Virus record (IMG/VR): IMGVR_UViG_3300035698_035366
Span: 124,001 to 188,000 of that record
Strand: one strand, 5' to 3'
Length of the DNA stretch: 64,000 bases
How positions within the stretch are numbered: position 1 is the first letter of the stretch; each line of letters begins with the position of its first letter. The translations under genes and the position numbers were made by a program. The notes below the pieces were generated by a model, which saw only the letters and a program-made list of their open reading frames with translations, was not told where the DNA came from and searched no databases. This document shows, one piece after another, positions 2-63,999 of this stretch.

Positions 2-1426
2 CACCGCTTTGAAACAAGAGATGCACAAACAGAACAAGATTTTGGTGGACGACCAAAACCAAAATTCCTGTTTGGTGTGCGATTCATAACTCAGTTCAAT
101 TCACCGGCCTTTGGACAATTTTCTGACCAAAATGGCGACGTCGCTTTTATGGTTAAAACTGTTGATAAACCAAAAATTGATTTTGACGTCACAGTTATGA
201 ATCAATATAATAAGCGTAGATTAGTTCAAACAAAAATAAAATATCAACCAATTAATATGCGTTTTTATGATTCAGTAGATGAAAGACTATCAAAATTTAT
301 ATTATCATACATGCAGCATTACTATGGTGATCATTTAGCAGAAAATGTTGATCAATGGAGTTATGATAAAATTTCTTCAGAATTCAATAATGGTGTAGAT
401 GGTTGGGGTTACAGAGGTATTTCCCAACCAGGCCGCTCAAATTCTGCCCCTTTCATGTCACATATTGAACTTTATCAATTCTTTGGTGGTAATTTTTCTC
501 GTTGGGTTTTTGTTAACCCATTGATTACTAGCTTTGATCATGATAATGTTGATGCAGAATCGGGCAATGTTGCACAAGAAGCAAGTATGTCAGTCGAATT
601 TGAAGGACTTCTTTATAGAGAAAAAAATATCCCATTAGCAACATCTAAAGTTGGTCGCGCAGCAATTGATTTCTTCAAGCTAGAAGAGTTCGCTGATAAT
701 TTAGAATTACCTGATGCACTACAAATCGGCGGTTTAAATCTCGGTGGTATTAGTGATCTTGCATCGGCTAGATCAGTTTTTGGTCGAGAACTTGGTAGGA
801 AAACAATCGAAGTTTTGAGCGGTAGCCCAATCGATACATCAGGCATTTCTAGAACATCATCATCGGCATTAACACCGTTTGGTAACTTTGATTTTGGTTC
901 AGTTATTGTTGGTGAAGGTGTTGATGGATTAATTAGTAGCGGTGTAAGTGGATCGACAGGTGCGGTTTCAAACGCCATTAGAGCTGGTACTGCAAACGTT
1001 GCACGTGATGCTCTTAACTTGGTTAGAGGTAATATTCTTGGAACAGGTGGTACTCGACTCAATGACGGCGCTGCCTCGTTTTGTGCTGACCCAGCAACAG
1101 GATCTGGGACTTCACCGTCCGCATCCCCGGCAGGTGCCGCCAAAGCTGTTGGTCAAACAGGTGGGTTTTCCACACCAGGAGTAGCAGCAGATGAAAATTC
1201 AGCAGTTGTACAGTTTGCAGGAGCGGTGACAACTGGTGTTGATACAGTGGTCAAAGGGGTTGGTGATGGTTTACAGTTTGGATTAGAGACCATCGGGCTT
1301 AGAAATTCCCAATCTACTACAGGAAACCAAATTGGAGTAACAGCTAAACCATTTGTTGACCCAGATTCATTAACGCCTTCACAACGGGCTATTCGGGCAC
1401 AAAACCAATTTCCGGATAACACCTGA
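2..1426 (+). CDS. Tail tube/baseplate (T4 gp19/gp48/gp54-like) protein with long Gly/Ala/Ser/Thr-rich C-terminal extension; 5' end runs off the window
   Basis: Frame is open from position 2 (…RPKPKFLFGVRF…), upstream of the ORF-track start at 77. Motifs VKTVDKPKIDFDVTVMNQYN, YQPINMRFYD and ITSFDHD…SVEFE are typical of tube-fold proteins. Confidence 0.6.
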   Translation, partial: HRFETRDAQTEQDFGGRPKPKFLFGVRFITQFNSPAFGQFSDQNGDVAFMVKTVDKPKIDFDVTVMNQYNKRRLVQTKIKYQPINMRFYDSVDERLSKFILSYMQHYYGDHLAENVDQWSYDKISSEFNNGVDGWGYRGISQPGRSNSAPFMSHIELYQFFGGNFSRWVFVNPLITSFDHDNVDAESGNVAQEASMSVEFEGLLYREKNIPLATSKVGRAAIDFFKLEEFADNLELPDALQIGGLNLGGISDLASARSVFGRELGRKTIEVLSGSPIDTSGISRTSSSALTPFGNFDFGSVIVGEGVDGLISSGVSGSTGAVSNAIRAGTANVARDALNLVRGNILGTGGTRLNDGAASFCADPATGSGTSPSASPAGAAKAVGQTGGFSTPGVAADENSAVVQFAGAVTTGVDTVVKGVGDGLQFGLETIGLRNSQSTTGNQIGVTAKPFVDPDSLTPSQRAIRAQNQFPDNT

Positions 1427-22096: not shown

Positions 22097-22732
22097 ATGG
22101 CTAAAACAGTGAAAAATACAAATAAAAACCCATATATGGAAGCATTGGCTGCATTAGACAGGGGTGATTTAGAGTATTGGAACCGTTTAGAGGAAGATGA
22201 TAGAAAGAAGATTCCTCCTTTTATTCTTGTGCAATATATGGCTTCCTATGCAGACAGTGAAGTTGATTGGAATGAAGCAAAGAGTCAAGGGCGTAAAAAG
22301 GGTGATGGTAAGGGTGCATGGCCACAACGATTATCTGATAATGCAGTTACTGAAGATTATTTGATACTCGTAAATGAAATGATTAACTTGAGTCTTTGGT
22401 CAATTATTGGTAAACCAGATATGGCATGGAGACTACTGGCCTATATTGGAAGAACTGTGAATAGTTCGAGCTTTTCTCCGAATCGAAATAGCCAACATGT
22501 TTGGATTAATCCAGGAAAGATGAGCACCACACCGAAACTAGATGAATTATTGCATAAATTATACCCATTGGCAAATGGCGATGAAATTGATTTAGTTCGA
22601 AATAATATGTCGGCCAAAGATGTTCAAGATATATGTGAAGATTCCGCAATGGATGCAGCAAAAGTAAAAACATATGTGAAAGAAATGCGTGATTATATTA
22701 AATCTAGAGATGAAGATGACGAATCCGAATAA
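22097..22732 (+). CDS. Possible clamp-loader small subunit (T4 gp62-like)
   Basis: ALAALDRGD…W…PPFILVQYMAS pattern and location. ATG 22097 follows GGAG. Confidence 0.4.
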   Translation: MAKTVKNTNKNPYMEALAALDRGDLEYWNRLEEDDRKKIPPFILVQYMASYADSEVDWNEAKSQGRKKGDGKGAWPQRLSDNAVTEDYLILVNEMINLSLWSIIGKPDMAWRLLAYIGRTVNSSSFSPNRNSQHVWINPGKMSTTPKLDELLHKLYPLANGDEIDLVRNNMSAKDVQDICEDSAMDAAKVKTYVKEMRDYIKSRDEDDESE

Positions 22733-33754: not shown

Positions 33755-33952
33755 ATGTCTAACGTATCCATTATGAGATCGATAATCAACGATTTGGCTA
33801 ATGAAAAAAGAATTTCGTTAATCGAAAATCCCGGCGTTACTATGCCAGACCAACGGTCATTACGTGATCAATTGTGGGATTTGCATTCTCTAGCAAATCG
33901 AAATAAATTATACGATGCTGCTGATTGGTTGAAAAGGTATTTGGAGAAATAA
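33755..33952 (+). CDS. Small hypothetical protein
   Basis: 65 aa, RBS AAGGAG. Confidence 0.6.
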   Translation: MSNVSIMRSIINDLANEKRISLIENPGVTMPDQRSLRDQLWDLHSLANRNKLYDAADWLKRYLEK

Positions 33953-33954
33953 AT

Positions 33955-35181
33955 ATGTCTTCAGCTAATTATATGCGCGACATTTTAGATAATATGCCCC
34001 ATCGTTTAGATGAGAAAGGTATTATTGGTAGAGCTATGGGTTCTGCCAAACGCAAAGCTTCTAAGCGTATAGGACAAGCCAGGGTTGATAGCGGAAATGC
34101 TAAAAAATCTGCTAAAGGATCTCAACAAGTGCAAGATGTGGATTCTTATGATAATATGGTTGATGCGTTTGGTTATACGTGGAATACATGGTCGAGTAAT
34201 AAAAAAGATAATAATAAATGGCCTGATGCAGATCGCAAACGTAATGGTACAAAAACAAAAACTGTTGGTAATCTGGCATTGTATCTTTTTGGCTTGGGGC
34301 TTGAAGTAACAGAAATTAGAGACTTCTTCAGTCAAGCTAAACTTGATGCACGAGAAGGATTAGGGAAAATTAAAAACCATTTGGATGCAACGGGATTGGG
34401 GAATCAACCGAAAGACACGAAAGACACGAAAGACCCTAACGTCGCGAAAGACACTAACGACACCGAAGACCCAGACGATTTACGCAATATACTTGATTCA
34501 ATGCGTATACCAACTTCAGCTGATAGATTCATGCTATTAGAATTTGTTGTGTTATTAACCGAAGCCGGCGCGTCTTTCAACTTGAAGTCAGTAGCTGACG
34601 ATTTTGCAAACTGGGCCATTGATACTGGCAAAGATTATTTGGGAATCGGTAATGATGATGGTACTGACGGTGCAGGTGAAGAGAAAGTAGATACTGAAGA
34701 GTTTCGAAAAGATTTAATCTCAGCACTTCTAAAATATGGTAAAGGGACCAGTAAGAACCCTGAATGGGTTCAGAACCGCCTCCTACCAGATTCCAAAATG
34801 GAATTATTGCAAAAATTGAATAAACTTAATAACAAGGATGCCAAAAACCCCGAGGAAGAATTAAATGGTACTTTGATAAATGACGAAAAGAATCGAAAAT
34901 TTATCGAGTTTGCCCATATACTTTTGGGAATGTATAAAGATAACAAAGAAAAGTACAGTTTGTTGAGTAAAGAGATAATGAAGGCTATGGTTAAGGCTGG
35001 CCCCGCGGATGGAAAAAGTGCTGGGAAAGAAATTGAAGATGGTTTAAAGAACTACTTACGGCAAATATCTGGTCCTATGAAAAATAATGCGTATGAACAG
35101 GGAACAGCTAGAAAGCTTTGGGCATTTGGATATGCCGGAGCAAGGTATATTAACAATAAGAAGTTATACGTGGAGAAATAA
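33955..35181 (+). CDS. Putative internal head/ejection protein
   Basis: ATG 33955 after GGAG; leader ending LDE|KGIIG. Confidence 0.55.
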   Translation: MSSANYMRDILDNMPHRLDEKGIIGRAMGSAKRKASKRIGQARVDSGNAKKSAKGSQQVQDVDSYDNMVDAFGYTWNTWSSNKKDNNKWPDADRKRNGTKTKTVGNLALYLFGLGLEVTEIRDFFSQAKLDAREGLGKIKNHLDATGLGNQPKDTKDTKDPNVAKDTNDTEDPDDLRNILDSMRIPTSADRFMLLEFVVLLTEAGASFNLKSVADDFANWAIDTGKDYLGIGNDDGTDGAGEEKVDTEEFRKDLISALLKYGKGTSKNPEWVQNRLLPDSKMELLQKLNKLNNKDAKNPEEELNGTLINDEKNRKFIEFAHILLGMYKDNKEKYSLLSKEIMKAMVKAGPADGKSAGKEIEDGLKNYLRQISGPMKNNAYEQGTARKLWAFGYAGARYINNKKLYVEK

Positions 35182-35182
35182 T

Positions 35183-35956
35183 ATGACCTTTGAACTGTTT
35201 AATGATTTGTTGGAAAGTAGATTAATAAGGAGTCGATCGGCTTTATCAAAATATGATGCACAGGACATTGCTAATCTAACATTTCTATATTTTATTGCTA
35301 TGGAAATTTTATCACAGGAGTTTTCAACAACTAGATTTGCAAGTAATTATGCTCGAAAGACCATTACATATAATAATTTTGATAGGCTAATAACCGCATC
35401 TACTGATTTATATGTACTAATGCATGTATTGATGGGTAAGAATAGCGAGGAAGCCCGTAAGCAATTAAAAAATGATTCATCGAATGATGTTTTTTTCCAA
35501 GGATTGAATTTACCGCTTCCACAAATTAAAAAATATTTTAACGATATTCATAAAAATAAACGGGATACTGGTTTTTCGAGACGTTTATTATACACACTAC
35601 AAAGCAAATTAAGAATATCCAATTCAAATTATCGCTCGATGCGAATATTAGCAAGTGATTGGTCTGAACAGACAGAAGAGCGTAAGCGTTTAACAATGAC
35701 TAGGTTGCTTATGGCATTACGAAAAAATGCAATTATGAGTGAACTTCTACCGGTATTAGAAAAAGTGGCTAAGAGTAATAAATATGAGATAAAAGGAGCC
35801 AATAATCCAGAAGAAGAACAGCCAAAGAAAAATGGTAGTAATTTTTGGAAAACATTGGCTGTTGGGGCATTAGGTGCCGCAGGTGGCGCATATGCTGGAT
35901 ATAAATTAGTTCAAAATCCAAATATAAGGAAACAGAGATCATGGTCAACCAAATAA
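35183..35956 (+). CDS. Putative virion protein with C-terminal glycine-rich hydrophobic helix
   Basis: MTFELFNDLLES leader; FWKTLAVGALGAAGGAYAGYKLV. Confidence 0.6.
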   Translation: MTFELFNDLLESRLIRSRSALSKYDAQDIANLTFLYFIAMEILSQEFSTTRFASNYARKTITYNNFDRLITASTDLYVLMHVLMGKNSEEARKQLKNDSSNDVFFQGLNLPLPQIKKYFNDIHKNKRDTGFSRRLLYTLQSKLRISNSNYRSMRILASDWSEQTEERKRLTMTRLLMALRKNAIMSELLPVLEKVAKSNKYEIKGANNPEEEQPKKNGSNFWKTLAVGALGAAGGAYAGYKLVQNPNIRKQRSWSTK

Positions 35957-36903
35957 AGAGAGAGATGCGTAAATTGTTGGATCATATTAATGATGGTTAT
36001 AATAATACGACACCAAAGAAAAAGTTGAATGAGAGTCGTATTGTGATGGAAGCTGATAATGATTTCACAGATGCTCTACGCCAGAAGATCGTTAATGACG
36101 ATGATTATAAAAATGGTGACGTACATCAAGCAATTTTGAATGTCGCATATGATGATTGGCAAAATAATGATAAAATGCAAGGTTATAGAGATATGATTGA
36201 ACATACCCATGTTACTTATGGTCCATTGGCTGCATTTGCAGTTCTTGCAGGAAAGCACAACCAACAAGTTGAGAATGGTGGCCATGCGCAATATTTCGAT
36301 AATGGTTATGCTGGTGGTGATGGGCCGGGTGGTCGGAAAGATGAAAGTGATACAGAATTGCATCAAATGCTCATTGAATTCGCCAATCAATATAATATTT
36401 CATCCTTATCCGGTGGTTCAGATGCTTTAGAAATTTATAATGAATGGAAACCAAGTCAATCAGATTGTGATGAATGCGGCGGTAATGGACACTACGAAGA
36501 AGACTGTCCTGACTGTCATGGTCAAGGTATGGATGATGAAGGAGAAACGTGTGAATACTGTGATGGTAGCGGAGTTGATCAAGGCGAATGTAGTCAATGC
36601 TGGGGAAGTGGTGAAGGTGAAGTTACCGGAGAAGCTGATTATTTAGATAGTGCATGGTATAAACTTAACGGACCATACATGAAAGCATTAAACAGTTTCT
36701 TTGCCAGCAAGCTAAAATCCAATACAACAGAAGAAAGCTTTAACCATGTAGAAGAAACAGCTACTTCCGGTGGATCAAGTGCTGGTGGTATCGCGTCTGT
36801 ACCTGGATCTTTGGGTGCGGGATTCGGCGGAGACCCAAAAGCAAGCATTTATCACAAAAAAGAAAAGAAAAACCGGAAAAAGCCTACCATAATTAAGAGA
36901 TAA
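35941..36903 (+). CDS. Protein with DMP19/DUF4375-like domain and inserted DnaJ-type zinc finger
   Basis: QQVENGGHAQYFDN plus four CxxCxGxG repeats. Confidence 0.6.
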   Translation: MVNQIKREMRKLLDHINDGYNNTTPKKKLNESRIVMEADNDFTDALRQKIVNDDDYKNGDVHQAILNVAYDDWQNNDKMQGYRDMIEHTHVTYGPLAAFAVLAGKHNQQVENGGHAQYFDNGYAGGDGPGGRKDESDTELHQMLIEFANQYNISSLSGGSDALEIYNEWKPSQSDCDECGGNGHYEEDCPDCHGQGMDDEGETCEYCDGSGVDQGECSQCWGSGEGEVTGEADYLDSAWYKLNGPYMKALNSFFASKLKSNTTEESFNHVEETATSGGSSAGGIASVPGSLGAGFGGDPKASIYHKKEKKNRKKPTIIKR

Positions 36904-38596: not shown

Positions 38597-38905
38597 ATGA
38601 CACTTGACGAATTATTTGAAGATGATGATTTCGAGAAAGAACTTGGGGAATCAGTAAAACGTATTTGGGCGAGATCTGGTAAGAAGGTTGTTCGTAAATT
38701 CAGGTGTACTGCTGGCCCAAAACAAGGTCGTATTGTTGCATCCGCCGCCGCATGTGGACGCGCACCTGATCCTAAAAAGCGTATGACGTTGAAAAAAACA
38801 AAAGCTGCTAAGGGAAAGCGTATGTCCCGTAAGGCCTTAAAGACAAAAAAGAGAAATCCAGCTTCAATTAGAGTTCAAAGACTTAATAAACAGGCAGGTA
38901 AGTAA
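38597..38905 (+). CDS. Small basic protein with acidic leader (prohead core-like)
   Basis: MTLDELFE…LGE|S, then K/R-rich body with two Cys. Confidence 0.6.
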   Translation: MTLDELFEDDDFEKELGESVKRIWARSGKKVVRKFRCTAGPKQGRIVASAAACGRAPDPKKRMTLKKTKAAKGKRMSRKALKTKKRNPASIRVQRLNKQAGK

Positions 38906-56569: not shown

Positions 56570-57385
56570 GTGGATAAAACTCCCCTTGGTGATCGCATGA
56601 AAGCGTATGAAAATCAGGAAACTGGACGCAAATTAATGCCTGGACTTCCTGTTTATGCACGAGTAGATGGGCGAAGTTTCAGTAATTTTACAAAGAAATT
56701 TAAACGACCATTTGATTATGATATGTCGGCTATGATGGTCGCAACCACAAAATACCTAGTTGAAGAAACTCATGCTATCGTTGGTTATACCCAAAGCGAT
56801 GAGATTAGCCTTGCGTGGTTACCAAGCGAAGATCAAAATAACATGATTTTTGCAGGGAAGATTTTCAAATTGGTTAGTAACATTGCATCACTAGCAACGG
56901 TTAAGTTTAACCATTTGGGCGTTAACAGTGAAAACAAAGAAATTCTAAAGGCAACGTATTCTAAATTACCAACCTTTGATTGTCGAGTATGTCAAATACC
57001 CGATGAGGATGAACTCCTGAGCATGTTTATTTGGCGTGAACGGGATGCAATGAAAAATGCAGTTAGTATGGCAGCATCCGCCTATTTCTCCCACAAGTCA
57101 TTGAATGGTCTCACTGGTTCAGAAAAGCAGGAAAGGCTTTTTCAAGAAAAGGGGATTAATTTTAACGATTATCCGTCATTCTTCAAGCGTGGAACTTATG
57201 TTCGTCGTGTCAATGTTGAACGTCATCTCACCGATTATGAGATGGAAGACATTCCAGAACAACATCGTCCAACTGGTCCAGTTATTCGAAGTAAAATTGT
57301 TAGTCTTGATATTCCACCAGTTGCAAAATTGGATAATGCAAAGACTGTATTGTTTGGTGATCTTCCTTCATCTTGCTATAAATAA
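56570..57385 (+). CDS. tRNA(His) guanylyltransferase / Thg1-like protein
   Basis: RMKAYE, ARVDGRSF…RPFD, YTQSDEIS, FDCR, WRERDA…N. Confidence 0.9.
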   Translation: MDKTPLGDRMKAYENQETGRKLMPGLPVYARVDGRSFSNFTKKFKRPFDYDMSAMMVATTKYLVEETHAIVGYTQSDEISLAWLPSEDQNNMIFAGKIFKLVSNIASLATVKFNHLGVNSENKEILKATYSKLPTFDCRVCQIPDEDELLSMFIWRERDAMKNAVSMAASAYFSHKSLNGLTGSEKQERLFQEKGINFNDYPSFFKRGTYVRRVNVERHLTDYEMEDIPEQHRPTGPVIRSKIVSLDIPPVAKLDNAKTVLFGDLPSSCYK

Positions 57386-57563: not shown

Positions 57564-58016
57564 ATGGAATGGGAACAATTACAACCTTCACAATTGCAAG
57601 AACTCGTTGATTACGAAGTTGGTATTTTTGATGAACCTGACCGAAGCACTGTTCAAGAATATCTTAACCATATAAAAACAAATAATTTACATATTCACGT
57701 ATTGCGTGACTCTTCCGGAATTATTGGTTGTTATCAAATATTACCTGAAGAAGATCGGGTTTTTATGTGTGGTTTCTCCATACATCCAAATCATCGCGGT
57801 GGGGATTTATCTAGAATACTTATGAATCATCTTATCCACAATTACCTTGATCAAGGGATTGTTTGTAAAACATTAGCCAATCATCCAGCAATGCGCAAAA
57901 TATTGAATTCATCTGGTTGGAAAAATGATCTAGATAAATTTGAAAAGGGAATTTTGTGGAGTTGGTGGTATATCAATAATGATACCATTGCTAAAAAAGC
58001 TGGCTTGAAGCCTTAA
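57564..58016 (+). CDS. GNAT-family acetyltransferase
   Basis: FSIHPNHRGGDLS acetyl-CoA loop and N-H-P-A…L…SGW. Confidence 0.75.
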   Translation: MEWEQLQPSQLQELVDYEVGIFDEPDRSTVQEYLNHIKTNNLHIHVLRDSSGIIGCYQILPEEDRVFMCGFSIHPNHRGGDLSRILMNHLIHNYLDQGIVCKTLANHPAMRKILNSSGWKNDLDKFEKGILWSWWYINNDTIAKKAGLKP

Positions 58017-60697
58017 ATTTCTAGTTCTTTTGGAATTGGGATACCATCACCTTCTAAACGTTCTTTAAATCGCTGGAATACAATCTTACGCAATTCAATT
58101 GGTTTCTTTTTAAGTAACGGCATTATGGTTTCAACTCTATCTAGATCCGCGGCGGTTACATCAGTCTTTACATCACCAAACAAAAATTGGGCAATATCAT
58201 TTGGGTTATCCATAGACCACTTTTTTCCAAACTTATCAATTTCAACGCTGGTGAATTCTTTCTTAAAATTCTCTATGTCTACCGTCTGTTCACCCTTTAG
58301 TCTTGGCTTACTAGCAAGATCAACGCCTTGCTTAATTTCCTTTTTCGTAAGCTTTTTTCTTGGGCGCAATTTGGCGCGGATATTTAATCCAGTGCTTGGT
58401 GCAAAGGCTGGGCCAAATCGACCAACCAATTCATCATCTCCTTCATCATAGAAGATTTGGTTCATAGCACTAGCCATACTTGCTATTAATATCGTACGAA
58501 GAACACCTTTATATTTTGATTTATCACCCGCAGAATGATATCCAAATTTTAGGGTATTTGCATTACCAAACATAAAATCTACTTGCACCATGCCAGTGCG
58601 TTCTTTATCTGTTTGATCATTTATGCTTTCATCGTAACCAGCAATTTTCATTGGGAATGAAATGACCGCTCCGAGCCTTGGATTAAGACCGGCTTTTTTG
58701 AGTTCATTGAATACTTCTTGTTTATCATGCAACCCATCATCCAGCGCAATATCAATATCACCTGAGAATTTGGCCTTACCAACGGATCCAAGAGTACCAT
58801 TCTTAATTTCACTAAATGGTATATCAGCAGCCTTTGCGATTTCTTTTAACGTGGCGGGAATTTCCCCTATATAAATTGCACCACCCCCCTCAATAGCTCG
58901 ACCACCTTCCATAATTATAGATTCAGTAACGGACTCATGAGCAAGAAGAGCAATCAAATCATCCATTTGTTCTTCATCAAAATCACCAAGTTCAGAATAT
59001 TGTTTTTGCAATTCCGAGCGAATCTTATTAACTGCTAATGCAGTTTTTCCACGGCGTTTTGCATTGGTATAGAACGATCGTAGTTTGGTGAGCCTTCCAC
59101 CTTTTGATAGGTCAGTTGCAACTCTAGCGACATCATCGCCCTTGTTTGCCAAAGACTTACCAATTTTTATAGCACCTTGTCCTAGTTTACCAACACCACG
59201 TGCAAGAGCTGAAACTCCTTTACCAACACCTGAGATAATTCCTTCGTCGATATATTCCTCAGTTGTAATGGATGATAATTTATCACCAGCAAAAATTACA
59301 ATCAAATCTTCTGGTGTTTTAGCTGTTTTCAATGCTTTTAAATAATCAGCAAGTAATTCATGTGTTTCTGCAAATGTTTGTAATGTACGTTCTTTTACAC
59401 CTTCTTGATAATCTATGTTAGCATACTGACCAGTTTTGTTTTTGAAATTCTCTAAATTATCTAATAGTTCTTTGTTAGCTACCTTAACTTGTTGGACAAA
59501 AACCTTCTTAACTTTGGGGAAATTCATATCTGATGCTAGATTAACTGTTTGTTCTTCTGCACTGTTACCGAATTTTTTAGCATACCTCTTCGCTTGGGCA
59601 CCACTTAATGGACCATGACCCATTACATTGGCTACTTCATGTCGCATTTTCATAACAACTGATTCTGAGTTACGACTATCATAAATGTCGTTCCGAACTA
59701 GCCAATTATAATTATTGATTGAAGTGAAACCTTCTTTGTCTACGATTTTAGTCATTGCTCCTTCTTGATCTTTAGCAACGACCCCTTCGATCCAACCCCC
59801 GTTCTCAATATCAGGACCAAAGTCAGATTGTTGATTATGCACAAAAGCAGAAAGGAGTTGGTTTTTAATCTCCAGCTTGGATGACATTAATGCCTTTTTG
59901 ATTTCTTCTTGTTTTTCTTTTACCAGGGCCTTAATTTCTTTCCAATTGCCGTCACCAAGCCAATCTGGCTTTTTATTAAGTGGAATGGCAATAACTTCTT
60001 TAACTAAGAGTTCTTTTTCACCAACTTTGATATTTCTATCAAGTAAAACTTCTATCTTCTTAACTTCCTCATCTACTATCTGTTGAGCTTCTTCATTGCT
60101 CATTTGATCAGCACGTTTTTTTGGAACAACTGCAACGACCCATTCATGTTCCTCATCTCTACGATTAATGGAGATACCATTTTCAGTATATGGAACATTT
60201 TCAACTTGAACAGTTACTTCATGATCTTCCAGAACTTTGTTCATGTGTTCAAGAGATTTTCTAGCCTCATCACTGTCCTTTTCAGAGTCTTTTGAAAGTA
60301 AAATTATTTGGTTAATTTCACCACTATAAAGAACAGCATTTGGTAATTTTCCAAATAAAATCTCTACGGAGAAAACATCACCTGTTTGTATAATCTTTCG
60401 TTTACGTAATGGAGTCATTAATTTCTTTAGGGCATCATGCGCAGAACGAAAACCAGTCGACATAAATTTAGTTCCCCATTCATCTCCATTACGAATCCGT
60501 CGATCGTCACCTTTGTTTTCCCTACTTGTAAAAAACCCGTCATCATCGAAGCCAAATCTCATAGCGGCACCATCGACTTTTTCGGAGATTTCCCATGAAT
60601 TGAGGTTCTTTACAGCTCGAAGAAACTCATCCTCGCTTAGATCCTCAATATGGGTAATACCCTCGTTTAGATCTACATATAATTCGTTGAGTATCAT
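58013..60697 (-). CDS. Polyprotein: RNA/DNA-ligase-like adenylation domain + Pol-beta-family nucleotidyltransferase domain
   Basis: ISEKVDG (motif I), EGVVAK (IV), KIVDK (V); later LGSVGK…SGDIDIA and VQVDFM. Domains are bounded by LNE|G, IDE|G and IME|G. Confidence 0.7.
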   Translation of the reverse strand: MILNELYVDLNEGITHIEDLSEDEFLRAVKNLNSWEISEKVDGAAMRFGFDDDGFFTSRENKGDDRRIRNGDEWGTKFMSTGFRSAHDALKKLMTPLRKRKIIQTGDVFSVEILFGKLPNAVLYSGEINQIILLSKDSEKDSDEARKSLEHMNKVLEDHEVTVQVENVPYTENGISINRRDEEHEWVVAVVPKKRADQMSNEEAQQIVDEEVKKIEVLLDRNIKVGEKELLVKEVIAIPLNKKPDWLGDGNWKEIKALVKEKQEEIKKALMSSKLEIKNQLLSAFVHNQQSDFGPDIENGGWIEGVVAKDQEGAMTKIVDKEGFTSINNYNWLVRNDIYDSRNSESVVMKMRHEVANVMGHGPLSGAQAKRYAKKFGNSAEEQTVNLASDMNFPKVKKVFVQQVKVANKELLDNLENFKNKTGQYANIDYQEGVKERTLQTFAETHELLADYLKALKTAKTPEDLIVIFAGDKLSSITTEEYIDEGIISGVGKGVSALARGVGKLGQGAIKIGKSLANKGDDVARVATDLSKGGRLTKLRSFYTNAKRRGKTALAVNKIRSELQKQYSELGDFDEEQMDDLIALLAHESVTESIIMEGGRAIEGGGAIYIGEIPATLKEIAKAADIPFSEIKNGTLGSVGKAKFSGDIDIALDDGLHDKQEVFNELKKAGLNPRLGAVISFPMKIAGYDESINDQTDKERTGMVQVDFMFGNANTLKFGYHSAGDKSKYKGVLRTILIASMASAMNQIFYDEGDDELVGRFGPAFAPSTGLNIRAKLRPRKKLTKKEIKQGVDLASKPRLKGEQTVDIENFKKEFTSVEIDKFGKKWSMDNPNDIAQFLFGDVKTDVTAADLDRVETIMPLLKKKPIELRKIVFQRFKERLEGDGIPIPKELEI

Positions 60698-60722: not shown

Positions 60723-60730
60723 TATTTAGC
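60723..60730 (-). promoter_or_regulatory. Late-promoter variant GCTAAATA
   Basis: Upstream of the ligase/NTase polyprotein. The same 8-mer lies upstream of genes at 2556, 28878, 32886, 37522 and 48827. Confidence 0.55.
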
Positions 60731-62837
60731 GACGTCTAATTGTATTAAACAGGGTTCGGAATTCTATAAATGCCGTGGTCATTTCGCCTCTCGAGTCCGA
60801 ATATGCAATGTCATATGCTAGATCCATTAATCTCTCAATTTCATCACTGGTTGCCTTCTTTCGAACAATAACAACTAAACGTACCCATCTAAATGGCACT
60901 GGATATCCCGGATACTTATCACCTCGAACTGGTCTATAACCAGTATCAGGAACTGATTCCTCTGGCACCGGCACTATGGTATCAGACATTTTTTCTGTTT
61001 CAATTTCAGTTGTTATATTAAACGATGATTCAGTTGTGGTTTTCTTCTCCCCGAGTTCAGTAGTCTGAGACCCATCTGACCATTTAATTGTTGTAACTGT
61101 CCAAGTTGTTAAAGTGGTAACGGTTTCAGTTTTAATTTGGAAATGATGATCTTCATAAACAACTGTATGAACATCACCATTGTCATGTGTGTGGGTTTCT
61201 GTTCTTTGTTCAACATGGGTCTCTTGACGAATTGGATCCAAAACTTGGATATTTTCAATTTTTTCAAGGTTTACAAATCTACCAGTTTCTTTTAGTTCTT
61301 TCTCCAAAATGGGTGTAAGTTTACTGTCGATAACTTCGTGAGAATGCGATACACTAACATCATCCTTGATTGTAATGCCCTCAAATGGTTCACCCTGTTT
61401 AACACCAATTGTACCATCAGAATATTTGGTTGTTGTAACCCATGCTTTGGTTATTATTGTGGAAATTTTTATCGTTGTAACGTGTTTGTAAAAACGAACC
61501 AACTCCCACAGGATAGAACCATCACTTTGTTCCGTTTCTTGTTCCTTATCTTCAAACGTAGTAACTGTTATTGGATCACCTTCACTTACCACTGTTGATA
61601 ATGTTTTGTATTCAGTCTTAACATCAACCACAGTAATTTCCTCAACAACCGGCTCTGGTTTAGCTTTTTCAATAATTGGTTCTAGATCAACATATAACGC
61701 TCTATTTGCTGAGGTTTGTGTAGCTCTTGAATGTAATGCTAATGTATCTTTGATAGATGAATTAACAACCCATTCATGAACATGTTCAACGTCCTTTGCA
61801 TTAGCGGTTGTTTCCATTCCTTGAGCATAAAGGGCGCAGGCTCCAGCAACGTGGGGTGAAGCCATCGAGGTACCTGAAAGCATATTTTCAGAATCAACGC
61901 CATCTTTTCCAGCAGCGCAAATATAATGGCCAGGGGCAAAAACGTCAACTGTTTTACCATAATTGGAGAATGAAGAAATTCTATCCTTGATATCATGTGA
62001 ACCAACAGTAACAGCGCGGGCAACTTCAGCAGGCATAACATCGTAACCAACTTCTGCAAGATCCCTGCCATCGTTACCAGCAGCAACAACACAAATTATT
62101 CCTGCATTGATGCAGTCATTTACAACCTGTTCTTCGGTCTTGTGTGCTGGCCCACCAAGTGATAGGTTCATAATGCTTGGGTTCATATTACCTTGAGCAC
62201 GCTTATTACGGTGATGCTTTAGGCACGCATCAATTCCAGAAACGATAGCAGCAAGAGAAGCACCACCAGTTTCAAACACCTTACTAATAAGAAGATTGCA
62301 TTCCTTAGCTACGCCATACTTCACCCCACCAACTGTAGATGCAACATGAGTTCCATGTCCCTGTTGATCAAACCCATAACCTGTTTGTCCTTTCTTCGCA
62401 TAGTAATCGAAGATTGGAACAGCGCGGCCTTGGAAATCATTATGAGAAAAGTTACAACCAGTATCAACTATATAAACGTCAACATTTTTTCCTGTTCGGT
62501 TATATTCGTATTTTCCATTAAATGGGTACCAGTTGCTATCATTCCATTCGTCACCGTGTGTAATTCTACTTAGTCCCCAATTATCACCAAAACCATATCG
62601 GGAAACAGCAATATTCTGAATAGCTTTAAATTCAACAATAGCATCCGCGGGTGCGACATGTTCGATCTCTCGTTCAGTTTTCAACTTGGTCTTTTTCATA
62701 TCGTCCATTGTAATTTTGAACATACGCTCTAAACCACGATAATCTTCGTCAATCGTAGCGTTATATCTAGAAGCTAGATTTTTGAATCTTTGGTTACTAC
62801 AACCCATTTTAACTGTTACGATATATTCTTTGTTCAT
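60726..62837 (-). CDS. Subtilisin-like S8 serine protease with I9-like prodomain and C-terminal Thr/Val/Glu-rich repeats
   Basis: VYIVDTG (D), GHGTHVAS (H), AAGN, SGTSMASPHVAG (S). RBS AAGGAG. Confidence 0.92.
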   Translation of the reverse strand: MNKEYIVTVKMGCSNQRFKNLASRYNATIDEDYRGLERMFKITMDDMKKTKLKTEREIEHVAPADAIVEFKAIQNIAVSRYGFGDNWGLSRITHGDEWNDSNWYPFNGKYEYNRTGKNVDVYIVDTGCNFSHNDFQGRAVPIFDYYAKKGQTGYGFDQQGHGTHVASTVGGVKYGVAKECNLLISKVFETGGASLAAIVSGIDACLKHHRNKRAQGNMNPSIMNLSLGGPAHKTEEQVVNDCINAGIICVVAAGNDGRDLAEVGYDVMPAEVARAVTVGSHDIKDRISSFSNYGKTVDVFAPGHYICAAGKDGVDSENMLSGTSMASPHVAGACALYAQGMETTANAKDVEHVHEWVVNSSIKDTLALHSRATQTSANRALYVDLEPIIEKAKPEPVVEEITVVDVKTEYKTLSTVVSEGDPITVTTFEDKEQETEQSDGSILWELVRFYKHVTTIKISTIITKAWVTTTKYSDGTIGVKQGEPFEGITIKDDVSVSHSHEVIDSKLTPILEKELKETGRFVNLEKIENIQVLDPIRQETHVEQRTETHTHDNGDVHTVVYEDHHFQIKTETVTTLTTWTVTTIKWSDGSQTTELGEKKTTTESSFNITTEIETEKMSDTIVPVPEESVPDTGYRPVRGDKYPGYPVPFRWVRLVVIVRKKATSDEIERLMDLAYDIAYSDSRGEMTTAFIEFRTLFNTIRRR

Positions 62838-62920: not shown

Positions 62921-63220
62921 TGTAAATGCTTGATGCTAATAATAGCAAATCAGGACCCGGGCTCGTTCCCGGCATCTCCACCAACACTTCGGTGGCATCT
63001 CTTTTTTATGGGGATGAAAGGTTCGACTGGTGCGTGAAAGTTTAGTTTAGTTTACATCGGATTGGTGAGCCGACCACAAAGTAACCCGTTTTAAATGCAA
63101 ACGACAATGCTCCCGTACAGGAAATGCGCCTAGCGGCCTGATCCTGGTAGGGAAATTCCGGAGACGAATGCGATCTTCGGTGGAGTTTGGAGGGCACTCA
63201 TCATCAGGAGCCCTCCGTTT
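62921..63220 (+). ncRNA. ssrA: Circularly permuted two-piece tmRNA
   Basis: Acceptor piece ends CATCTCC-A-CCA (62973-62983) and comes before the coding piece starting GGGGATG (63010). The two form a 7-bp stem with G3:U70. Tag ANDNAPVQEMRLAA* at 63097-63141. Outer boundaries are approximate. Confidence 0.92.
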
Positions 63221-63999
63221 TATTCCATAATTTCCAATTCAAGTTCCTCTAATAATATAGAAGAATCACTGCTTTTAGAACTATTTTCAGATACTGTTAA
63301 AAATTCGCAATTTTTTATATGTCCTATTATGGATGGGTCGATTTGATTGTTATAACCATAATGTATACTTAATCGATGATCTTTAACAACCCCACCTGGA
63401 TTATTTTTAGGATGAAACCATCCCAATTTAACCAATAAATCATATCCTTTGATTCCCTTTATATTTTCTGGTGTAATATGAAATGAACAAATAGAACGAT
63501 ATGAATGTATATCTTTTTCAGAACTGGATAAAATACGTTGTTGTTCCTCATTTAATGAGGTTATTTCGTGGTCCATAATTAATTGTAATTCTTTAATTAA
63601 TTCAGAGTATTTAGGATTGGTAATTTCTATTCTCTTTTGTATATGCTCCAATTTTCTAAACGTTGAGAAATTCCTTAAAAACATTTTTCGTATAGATTTG
63701 GTCTTGCGTTTTTGATTAAGTTTATAATAAATAGATTTTGGTATTAAATTATAGGCTAACAGCATCCTGTCCGCAAATATATAATTAGCAAACCCTACAT
63801 CCGATTGATCTATATCAATATTAAATAATGATTTTAACATTAATGATAATTCACTATGTGTTATATTAGGTAATTTCTTTTTGATAACGCCACCAAAGGA
63901 CTGATGCAAATCTGCTAACCCGTCAACTACAATTTCGGTATATGGATAATCGTTACTGTCTGAAGATAATGAACTATTAATATAGGCCCGTAGTTTGAT
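63220..63999 (-). CDS. HNH-like endonuclease; 5' end runs off the window
   Basis: KDHRLSIHYG…IIGHIKNCEFL…ENSSKS. The frame stays open from 63909 to the window edge. Confidence 0.65.
   Translation of the reverse strand: MKLRAYINSSLSSDSNDYPYTEIVVDGLADLHQSFGGVIKKKLPNITHSELSLMLKSLFNIDIDQSDVGFANYIFADRMLLAYNLIPKSIYYKLNQKRKTKSIRKMFLRNFSTFRKLEHIQKRIEITNPKYSELIKELQLIMDHEITSLNEEQQRILSSSEKDIHSYRSICSFHITPENIKGIKGYDLLVKLGWFHPKNNPGGVVKDHRLSIHYGYNNQIDPSIIGHIKNCEFLTVSENSSKSSDSSILLEELELEIME

Follow-up and report, generated by a model that had tools for sequence, protein, structure and literature searches.

A ligase–polymerase X fusion protein of a T4-like salt-lake phage as a probable precursor of packaged repair enzymes

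What use would a T4-like phage have for a single polypeptide that joins a ligase to a repair polymerase, with candidate head-protease sites before and between its folded parts? The question is raised by an 894-residue protein encoded in a 64,000-nucleotide stretch of DNA (the window; positions 124,001 to 188,000 of IMG/VR virus record IMGVR_UViG_3300035698_035366). The window is part of a 296-kb viral record that is 79% complete, the protein is also found on a 408-kb contig, and the locus comes from salt-lake metagenomes. By its gene content the phage belongs to the T4 superfamily: the record encodes a large terminase subunit, replication proteins of the gp32, UvsX, gp41 and gp61 types, ribonucleotide reductase (RNR), a gp23-type major capsid protein (MCP) and a gp21-type prohead protease (gene at 76483-77118 of the 296-kb record; PF03420, 91 bits, 76537-76986). 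The nearest named relatives by capsid protein identity are Sinorhizobium phage Phosso (82%), Atu_ph07 (68%) and PA5oct (66%). A preliminary description had read the protein as a late-expressed polyprotein of two enzymes, cut apart by the head protease and injected; the open reading frame (ORF) and all motifs that it listed were checked, and each lies at its given place. Our analysis favors, with a probability of about 0.58, a late-made precursor of a packaged two-enzyme module for fill-and-seal nucleic-acid repair that would be cut by the head protease.

The N-terminal 485 residues were compared with 41 relatives found by a word-indexed search. Ten positions in the nucleotidyltransferase motifs are invariant across this set, namely K40, D42 and G43 (motif I), E112 (III), E304, G305 and V307 (IV), and K317, V319 and D320 (V). 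Structure prediction for each domain, which the preliminary description had proposed, gave confident AlphaFold2 models with an RNA-ligase fold for the N-domain and a family-X polymerase (PolX) fold for the C-domain. The N-domain model has a predicted local distance difference test score (pLDDT) of 84.8 and a predicted template modeling score (pTM) of 0.82, with residues 1-12 and 477-500 disordered. Every one of its best 26 matches in a Foldseek search of the PDB is a ligase, with T4 Rnl2, T4 Rnl1 and the nick-sealing ligase of Naegleria, NgrRnl, at the head. VIA-align places it on NgrRnl residues 145-338 (Z 9.7), T4 Rnl2 6-234 (Z 8.5) and T4 Rnl1 44-251 (Z 8.3) and ranks DNA ligases and capping enzymes after the RNA ligases, the alignments covering about 185 residues at Z 8-9.7. 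Among the Swiss-Prot models, the best match is the trypanosome RNA-editing ligase REL1.

These structural alignments are confined to the nucleotidyltransferase core (model 12..331), and the N-domain carries an insertion of about 165 residues between motifs IIIa and IV. With VIA-align, no convincing counterpart was found for the Rnl1 C-domain, the Rnl2 C-domain or the Rnl5 N-terminal OB domain. The helical region 332-476 likewise matches no ligase accessory domain; it aligns loosely with the C-terminal regions of Rnl3 and the Aquifex ligase and otherwise with generic helical bundles. Whole-protein sequence searches of Pfam, PHROGs and the PDB returned nothing useful, and profile searches against the PDB gave a motif-level match to Pol lambda at E 0.8, apolipoprotein noise and nothing else. 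PF09414 (RNA_ligase) stayed below its 27-bit gathering cut-off, at 14.3 bits (E 0.045) with the whole protein and 15.7 bits in a genome scan; four N-domain homologues have a precomputed match to it. Taken together, the N-domain is, on the evidence of its model, an ATP-dependent ligase of the RNA-ligase (Rnl) structural type, for which self-adenylylation and sealing are predicted. With the motifs invariant and RNA ligases first in the fold search, the earlier reading of a ligase-type covalent nucleotidyltransferase holds.

Homologues of the N-domain occur in four forms: alone (about 490-520 residues), with a conserved C-terminal tail (about 570-590), with long uncharacterized extensions, and with the C-domain directly after (about 760-790). 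A common tail is found in the N-only homologues P0022, P0023, P0025, P0027, P0028, P0031 and P0036 and in ORF438 of phage RsoM2USA (L011:4947-6629). It consists of Phi-x-E↓DG(E/D)GG (Phi, a hydrophobic residue; the arrow, a presumptive cleavage point), an Ala/Thr-rich stretch and then ...P.R.F.GK..KR.KR...KKKK, and it resembles a cleavable C-terminal propeptide or a DNA-binding tail.

For the C-terminal 297 residues, an exhaustive phmmer search (E <= 0.001) found 346 relatives among cluster representatives. The catalytic carboxylates are D647 and D649, in the GS..SGDID motif, and D707, in VQVDFM. G637 and all three aspartates are invariant in 50 homologues, and S638 is invariant or nearly so. 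The AlphaFold2 model (pLDDT 94.0, pTM 0.89; residues 586-595 disordered) finds family-X enzymes, that is Pol beta, lambda, mu and TdT, in 50 of its 50 best Foldseek matches in the PDB. VIA-align lays model 15..270 on the palm and thumb of Pol lambda (376-575) and Pol beta (142-335) at Z 9.3, and the Swiss-Prot matches are PolX entries only (Pol beta, Pol mu, TdT). In the viral library, the near matches are uncharacterized phage proteins, followed by PolX of giant viruses. The domain starts at the palm, without the 8-kDa lyase and HhH fingers domains, an architecture like that of the minimal Pol X of African swine fever virus (ASFV). PF14792 membership was not reached, since one of 50 members touches that family, at E 0.028. 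We thus regard the C-domain as a minimal family-X polymerase of palm and thumb, again on the strength of its model, with nucleotide addition as its predicted activity. The identities of the two halves we consider very likely. An RlaP nucleotidyltransferase was also considered for the C-domain and rejected: PF10127 matched none of the 50 members at E <= 0.1, and nothing in the 296-kb record.

The two parts are separable modules that recur together. Among 160 C-domain relatives, 92 stand alone, 21 follow an N-domain of the same family, and about ten precede another K-x-D-G domain. Pfam assigns some of these downstream partners to PF09414 RNA ligase, PF01068 ATP-dependent DNA ligase or DUF6267. 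DUF6267 and the N-domain have an EGxV...KhV[DN][KR]..F..hN block in common; hhalign against the PF01068 fusion partner gave nothing useful. One relative is fused to the ATP-dependent DNA ligase domain and another to a deoxynucleotidase, and in Phosso and Atu_ph07 the two domains are encoded by adjacent genes. Ligases of at least three families are thus found beside C-domains of this family, in the same protein or the next gene and on either side, which is strong evidence for one pathway in which nucleotides would be added to a 3'-OH and the end then sealed. The two enzymes seen in the preliminary description appear to be partners in function, joined or neighboring in many lineages, rather than two unrelated pieces of cargo. 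An assembly artefact does not account for the fusion, because a 73%-identical protein of equal architecture lies among equal neighbors on an independent contig (L015) and about 20 further N+C fusions exist. The linker of about 112 residues between the domains (11.9 kDa, pI 9.5) is found in this protein and the 73% relative only; in the other N+C fusions the domains are joined directly, through a single Phi-x-E↓GG.

Phosso and Atu_ph07 keep the pair at a site whose syntenic counterpart in the window, 33925-36903 (+), follows the genes for primase (30096) and helicase (31447). That site holds the orthologue of Phosso gene 448/Atu_ph07 gp64 at 35087-35956, gp64 being a virion protein (PMC6102473). 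A separate pair of ligase-like and PolX-like genes is absent from window 33925-36903, which has a 418-residue ORF without assigned function (33925-35181) instead. The version in this phage thus lies elsewhere; it is only distantly related (about 29% identity), is fused and has a leader. A replicative role suggested by the primase and helicase synteny was rejected, as the genes downstream in Atu_ph07 and PA5oct are a virion-protein cluster. Also rejected was a replicative DNA ligase: the four reference phages with homologues all have a canonical DNA ligase too. The 296-kb record itself, at its 79% completeness, has no PF01068 or PF01653 gene.

We then come to the possible cleavage of the protein. 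T4-family prohead proteases cut after Glu, and T4 head cargo carries N-terminal capsid-targeting sequences (CTS), propeptides of 10-20 residues; giant phages have long propeptides and several cleavage sites (PMC9026906, PMC5694885; our comparison with T4 CTS is based on the descriptions in these two papers). In the protein studied here, [LI]-x-E-G occurs three times against 1.0 expected. Each of the three sites lies at the boundary between a disordered segment and a confident fold in the AlphaFold models, the folds beginning at the predicted P1' glycines, and the leader itself (residues 1-12) has pLDDT < 50. Of the phage's own head proteins, the MCP reads PLME↓TATAG near residue 58, and the scaffold protein opens with MDIIKSLLESEG.

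The homologues repeat the pattern. Phi-x-E stands immediately before an invariant G-I-x-H-I-E-D in 35 of the 41 N-domain homologues; their leaders vary from 3 to 37 residues with P1 and P3 fixed, and one homologue starts M-G exactly there. Among 109 alignable C-domain relatives, 41 start exactly M-G-G, while 27 have short leaders with Glu at P1, all but one of these with a hydrophobic P3 (26/27). Internal C-domain junctions are nearly all Phi-x-E↓GG, allowing a one-column shift in the alignment. An M-[KR]-Phi-x-[DE]-Phi start is common to the leaders of both unrelated domains and to long N-terminal extensions (85-230 residues). A removable, modular propeptide accounts for the whole pattern; a structural role for Phi-x-E fails to explain the 41 proteins that do without it. 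This comparative pattern of leaders and junctions is the strongest argument for processing, and we lean toward cleavage at all three sites. The three x-x-E↓G sites named in the preliminary description are therefore credible as T4-type prohead-protease sites, given the gp21-type protease, the disorder/fold boundaries and the homologue patterns, with cleavage itself still conditional.

A late-type promoter box had also been noted before this gene, and it is present. The box GCTAAATA occurs nine times in the window against 2.6 expected (2556, 27323(-), 28878, 32886, 37522, 39490, 46253, 48827 and 60723(-)) and 20 times in the 296-kb record, where 15 of the 20 copies lie within 80 nt upstream of a same-strand ORF start. 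Related TAAATA boxes precede other late genes: ATTAAATA at -35 of the MCP gene, CATAAATA at -38 and -39 of two virion genes, and TATAAATA at -70 of the terminase gene. For two of the genes that follow GCTAAATA, mass spectrometry has confirmed a homologue in virions, namely Atu_ph07 gp61 and PA5oct EST35_0222. Before the orthologues on the independent contigs L015 and L016, TACTAAATA and AATAAATA stand 24-25 nt upstream of the ATG. The box fits a T4-type late promoter, and the gene is presumably late.

Several further observations on boxes and leaders are recorded here in their own right. NNTAAATA, the general form of GCTAAATA, is promoter-like and found 20-70 nt upstream of many virion-protein genes; several box-preceded genes open with CTS-like leaders, such as MKKTFIEHLIE↓S (window 2598) and MRYDELLE↓V (296-kb record 83183). 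Nine of the 271 ORFs of the phage start M-R-L/I-x-E/D-L/F/I, for example MRLYELFDEDD and MRLNEIDAKR, those listed lying at 22314, 98783, 114432, 133853, 162597, 193791, 248988 and 261529 of the 296-kb record. The same start is found on leaders of the two enzyme families, and it may be the sign of a larger group of proteins targeted to the capsid. A 102-residue ORF (window 38597-38905, +) starts MTLDELFEDDDFEKELGE↓SVKRIWARSGKKVVRKFR, with a CTS-like acidic leader ending L-G-E and a small, very basic body, and resembles a T4-style internal head protein.

Homologues of both domains have been detected in virions. A tblastn match, RsoM2USA ORF438 (309479-311161), is an N-domain homologue with 29% identity over residues 10-499. 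Its leader, MLHRETLMLTFKQYAQPILTE↓GISHLEDL, ends ...PILTE↓GISHLEDL, and its C-terminal tail opens with three Phi-x-E sites. Tandem mass spectrometry coupled to liquid chromatography (LC-MS/MS) identified it in a band that is among the ten most abundant of purified RsoM2USA virions, listed at 51.69 kDa (PMC8504454); we calculate 62.4 kDa for the full length and 53.5-54.4 kDa for a product cut at both ends. Atu_ph07 gp65, a C-domain homologue, is present in virions with 10 unique peptides and 36.8% coverage (PMC6102473 supplement), and its calculated mass of 32.2 kDa equals the listed 32.16 kDa. Its neighbors gp53-gp69 were found in virions as well, and the authors describe coding sequences 31-76 as a virion-protein cluster (PMC6102473). 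Both ORF438 and gp65 were left unannotated in the published virion proteomes. We consider virion association of the family likely. The earlier proposal of capsid packaging thus gains support from outside, through these two homologues, and for the phage of the window it is to be expected rather than observed.

How could such a protein work? Its late timing, cleavage, packaging, ejection and substrate we infer as follows. The gene would be transcribed from its TAAATA promoter together with the virion genes, and the 12-residue leader would bring the precursor into the prohead core. There, inside the head, the gp21-type protease would cut after Glu12, Glu485 and Glu597 and release a ligase of about 54 kDa, a basic linker peptide of about 12 kDa and a minimal PolX of about 33 kDa; the basic peptide would be reminiscent of the T4 internal proteins. 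The products would leave the capsid with the DNA and be able to act before any phage gene expression, PolX adding one or a few nucleotides to a 3'-OH and the ligase sealing. Their most likely job would be the closure of nicks and short gaps in the incoming genome, possibly by way of a ribonucleotide patch; the alternative would be the mending of cleaved RNA. Damage could date from packaging, could build up as particles age under harsh conditions like those of salt lakes, or could be inflicted by nicking and restriction defenses of the host. The wider proposition, that T4-like jumbo phages preload their capsids with a protease-matured ligase and PolX, injected to repair the incoming genome before phage gene expression, is tentative and in our estimate falls a little short of even odds.

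Several points weigh against a packaged, processed repair module, and many of them would suit a rival account in which the protein is a cytoplasmic bifunctional repair enzyme, neither cleaved nor packaged, whose Phi-x-E↓G segments are structural domain starts and whose relatives were detected in virions by contamination or as a lineage-specific trait. The PA5oct homologue EST35_0228, in which P1 is Lys and not Glu, was not flagged among 93 virion proteins, and the N-like protein gp66 of Atu_ph07 is not in its virion list (PMC6102473 supplement). The Atu_ph07 virions were purified with polyethylene glycol only and held traces of single-stranded DNA-binding protein, RecA and RNR too (PMC6102473), and the listed 51.69 kDa of ORF438 is either a gel estimate or a calculated mass. 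Some relatives have leaders of 3-5 residues (MSE↓GG, MNLFE↓GG), too short for targeting signals; the Phosso and Atu_ph07 genes are leaderless. Since leaderless gp65 is nevertheless in virions, a leader is not required for virion association and is not its sole route, and for the same reason we rejected the equation of leaderless with cytoplasmic. Fusion kept in about 20 lineages suggests that the domains work best tethered, and Phi-x-E could be partly structural. The mature domains have no [LI]xE (0 in residues 40-482 and 620-894), which places the protein first among about 170 ORFs (shuffle p 0.013). This depletion was not used as a sign of exposure to the protease, because the homologues, even the 73% relative, have such internal sites at normal density. 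The phage itself is known from salt-lake DNA metagenome runs alone. Contamination, however, has to contend with two independent virion proteomes in which homologues are abundant or well covered. If Phi-x-E were structural, this would sit poorly with the 41 relatives that begin at M-GG, for which it is dispensable to the fold, and with leaders that are predicted to be disordered and highly variable in length around a fixed P1 and P3. The late-type promoter, common to virion genes, also speaks against a cytoplasmic enzyme, and we judge this account rather unlikely.

If the pair is packaged, its substrate has to be considered, as the nearest resemblance of the ligase half is to RNA ligases and that of the polymerase half to DNA polymerases, a discord that also counts against the favored reading. 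RNA repair is a serious alternative because of this resemblance of the ligase half. The injected enzymes would then heal and seal tRNAs of host or phage, or other RNAs, that anticodon nucleases cut as infection begins, with the Pol-beta-type domain restoring lost 3' nucleotides before ligation in the manner of RlaP. RlaP nucleotidyltransferases, working with RNA ligases, add 1-2 nucleoside monophosphates to damaged RNA 3' ends (PMC7824862; bioRxiv 10.64898/2025.12.29.696909). REL1, the top Swiss-Prot match, partners a Pol-beta-type terminal uridylyltransferase, the best fold matches of the N-domain are RNA ligases with some homologues reaching PF09414, and a Thg1-like gene lies next door on the opposite strand. 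Against this stand the exclusive affinity of the C-domain to DNA-repair family-X polymerases, the lack of any RlaP match, and the fusions with a DNA ligase domain and with a deoxynucleotidase. An injected dose of tens to hundreds of molecules is small beside the cellular tRNA pool and ample for a single genome, and the nick-sealing Rnl5 ligases, the top structural match, have been proposed to act on DNA with a ribonucleotide 3' end (PMC5397189). The incoming genome is favored because it would present few lesions to few enzyme molecules, because the C-domain matches PolX only, and because those fusions exist; the PolX, ligase and AP endonuclease packaged by ASFV also point to the genome. On balance the case tips slightly to DNA rather than RNA as substrate. 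The tRNA repair raised in the preliminary description is thus possible, but it is not favored over repair of the injected genome, and a packaged pair acting on RNA is in our view unlikely, if less so than the uncleaved cytoplasmic enzyme. A signaling or tailing role for the C-domain, as an enzyme of the cGAS/DncV-like, CCA-adding or poly(A) type that acts independently of the ligase and makes or antagonizes second messengers, is very improbable. It could appeal to the generic GS...DxD...D motif of the Pol-beta superfamily alone. All significant fold matches are PolX, and CCA-adding, poly(A) and cGAS/DncV enzymes are absent from the top 50 of either PDB fold search, from the top 30 in Swiss-Prot and from the Pfam matches. 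A class-II CCA-adding-like ORF is already present elsewhere in the genome, and the constant association with ligases argues for action on polynucleotide ends. The earlier assignment to the Pol-beta superfamily is upheld by these fold matches and by the invariant motif residues, whereas the CCA-adding, poly(A) and cGAS/DncV affinities and the suggestion of nucleotide signals find no support.

Table 1. Positions of the ligase–PolX gene, its parts and adjoining features in the window
Feature	Residues	Window position (nt)	Strand	Remarks
Ligase–PolX precursor ORF		58013..60697	-	894 aa, ATG start
Leader/propeptide (MILNELYVDLNE)	1-12	60662..60697	-	end L-N-E↓G; candidate capsid-targeting sequence and prohead-protease site
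Ligase-type nucleotidyltransferase core	13-331	59705..60661	-	motifs I K40, III E112, IV E304-G305, V K317..D320
KVDG	40-43	60569-60580	-	
SVEILFG	110-116		-	
EGVVAK	304-309	59771-59788	-	
KIVDK	317-321	59735-59749	-	
Helical C-terminal subdomain of ligase module	332-476	59270..59704	-	family-specific; model secondary structure
Linker	486-597	58907..59242	-	Gly-rich, basic; between IDE↓G and IME↓G
Minimal family-X-polymerase-like domain	598-894	58016..58906	-	palm, thumb and C-terminal helix
GSVGKAKFSGDID (GS..SGDID)	637-649	58751-58789	-	
VQVDFM	704-709	58571-58588	-	
LNE↓G	10-13			proposed cleavage site
IDE↓G	483-486			proposed cleavage site
IME↓G	595-598			proposed cleavage site
GCTAAATA box		60723..60730	-	T4-late-type promoter candidate (core TAAATA); 26 nt upstream of ATG, overlaps S8 peptidase stop codon
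Subtilisin-like S8 peptidase gene		60726..62837	-	703 aa; PF00082 at 3.4e-33; context only

The coordinates of these features are collected in Table 1. The S8 peptidase gene lies directly upstream of the ligase–PolX gene in the same orientation, and its product has a long, Thr/Val-rich, repetitive C-terminal half. The order of the two genes is repeated on contig L015, and they possibly belong to one late transcription unit. From the other side, genes for a Thg1-like tRNA-His guanylyltransferase (window 56570-57385, +) and a GNAT acetyltransferase (57564-58016, +) converge on the ligase–PolX gene; the GNAT stop overlaps its 3' end by 4 nt, an arrangement kept in L015. In the neighborhood of the 73%-identical relative, an S8 peptidase gene is again found immediately upstream, and GNAT, Thg1, glutaredoxin and RNR genes again converge.

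Other features of the window and record are given as side observations. A 229-residue ORF (window 63220-63909, -) has an HNH-like C-terminal region (...KDHRLSIHYGYNN...N...) and PHROGs matches only to families without assigned function; it may be a homing endonuclease. At 81447-82324 of the 296-kb record, just downstream of the intact MCP gene and a 551-residue minus-strand ORF, four ORFs of 68-86 residues (L006-L009) each match a separate piece of the gp23 capsid profile, and the pieces do not follow the order of the profile. What is left of a second capsid or vertex gene may lie here, or of a gene that a mobile element has broken up. Judged by N-terminal sequences only, the 296-kb record also appears to encode an EF-G/EF-2-like translational GTPase (...IGIIAHVDAGKTTTTERIL...; 87486-89609, -), NAD-salvage enzymes (70293-72798, -) and a class-II CCA-adding enzyme (GGxVRD...DxD; 91293-92501, +).

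The phage ejection proteins described so far block restriction, modify host RNA polymerase, carry out early transcription or form the DNA conduit, and to our knowledge none repairs nucleic acid. Our literature search found no paper on the packaging of a ligase or polymerase X by a phage, nor on the ligase–PolX fusion family. The preliminary description had singled out the locus as a candidate for an undescribed system. That stands for the fusion family and for phage packaging of these enzymes, as far as the literature found goes, but the general concept is not wholly undescribed: CTS-directed cargo, repair pairs of ligase and Pol-beta nucleotidyltransferase, and the packaged PolX and ligase of ASFV are all known ingredients. 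Should the favored reading be true, this would be the first known phage with a fill-and-seal nucleic-acid repair kit of its own, its products a previously unrecognized class of ejection proteins and a bacterial-virus parallel to the packaged repair of ASFV. The integrity of the genome would be guarded at the most vulnerable moment of infection by enzymes from the previous host. Two large families of phage proteins so far called hypothetical receive names and an activity that can be tested. The analysis also suggests a rule for spotting head cargo among the proteins of uncultured T4-like jumbo phages, in which Phi-x-E↓G follows a start of the form M-[KR]-Phi-x-[DE]-Phi. The unusual ligase and the minimal PolX may also find use as enzymes in themselves.

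Several known systems resemble parts of this protein. Bacterial LigD is a ligase–polymerase–phosphoesterase fusion of non-homologous end joining. Like it, the phage protein has a ligase and a repair polymerase on one polypeptide, for processing and sealing of ends or gaps; LigD, however, is a cellular, Ku-dependent enzyme with a polymerase of the archaeo-eukaryotic primase fold, a PF01068 ligase and a phosphoesterase in the fusion. The nick-sealing Rnl5 ligases (NgrRnl, DraRnl), T4 Rnl2 and REL1 are the best structural matches of the core, with all ligase motifs present; neither the N-terminal OB domain of Rnl5 nor the C-terminal domain of Rnl2 is found in the phage protein, which has its own 165-residue insertion and helical C-domain. 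A model for DraRnl has the enzyme seal in concert with a repair polymerase that adds ribonucleotides, such as PolX (PMC5397189). The pairs of RNA ligase and RlaP (PF10127) in bacteria and jumbo phages, linked by gene neighborhood, also restore 3' nucleotides and then seal (PMC7824862; bioRxiv 10.64898/2025.12.29.696909). In contrast to these, the C-domain is PolX-like and not PF10127, the ligase is of a separate family, and RlaP systems have not been reported as virion cargo.

The CTS cargo of T4 (IPI-III and Alt) has the same kind of short N-terminal propeptide ending hydrophobic-x-Glu, and a gp21-family protease is encoded in the genome here as well. Cargo enzymes of T4 come in together with the DNA, and Alt loses a piece at each end (PMC9026906). 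T4 cargo, however, consists of anti-restriction and host-modifying proteins, whereas here a repair pair is predicted and its precursor would be cut internally into three. Another parallel is ASFV, whose nucleoid packages PolX, ligase and AP endonuclease for repair before replication (PMC12172490). Its Pol X (O174L), ligase (NP419L) and AP endonuclease likewise combine a minimal palm-and-thumb PolX with an ATP-dependent ligase, are made late and are carried in the particle for pre-replication genome repair, as late synthesis and packaging would have it in the phage. ASFV is a eukaryotic virus with separate genes, a DNA-ligase-type ligase, no T4-type propeptide processing and no detectable sequence relationship to the phage protein. 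The phage protein has both enzymes on one chain and a ligase of the RNA-ligase type, and no partner AP endonuclease was found for it; what the two viruses would have in common is a polymerase and a ligase brought along with the genome that they repair.

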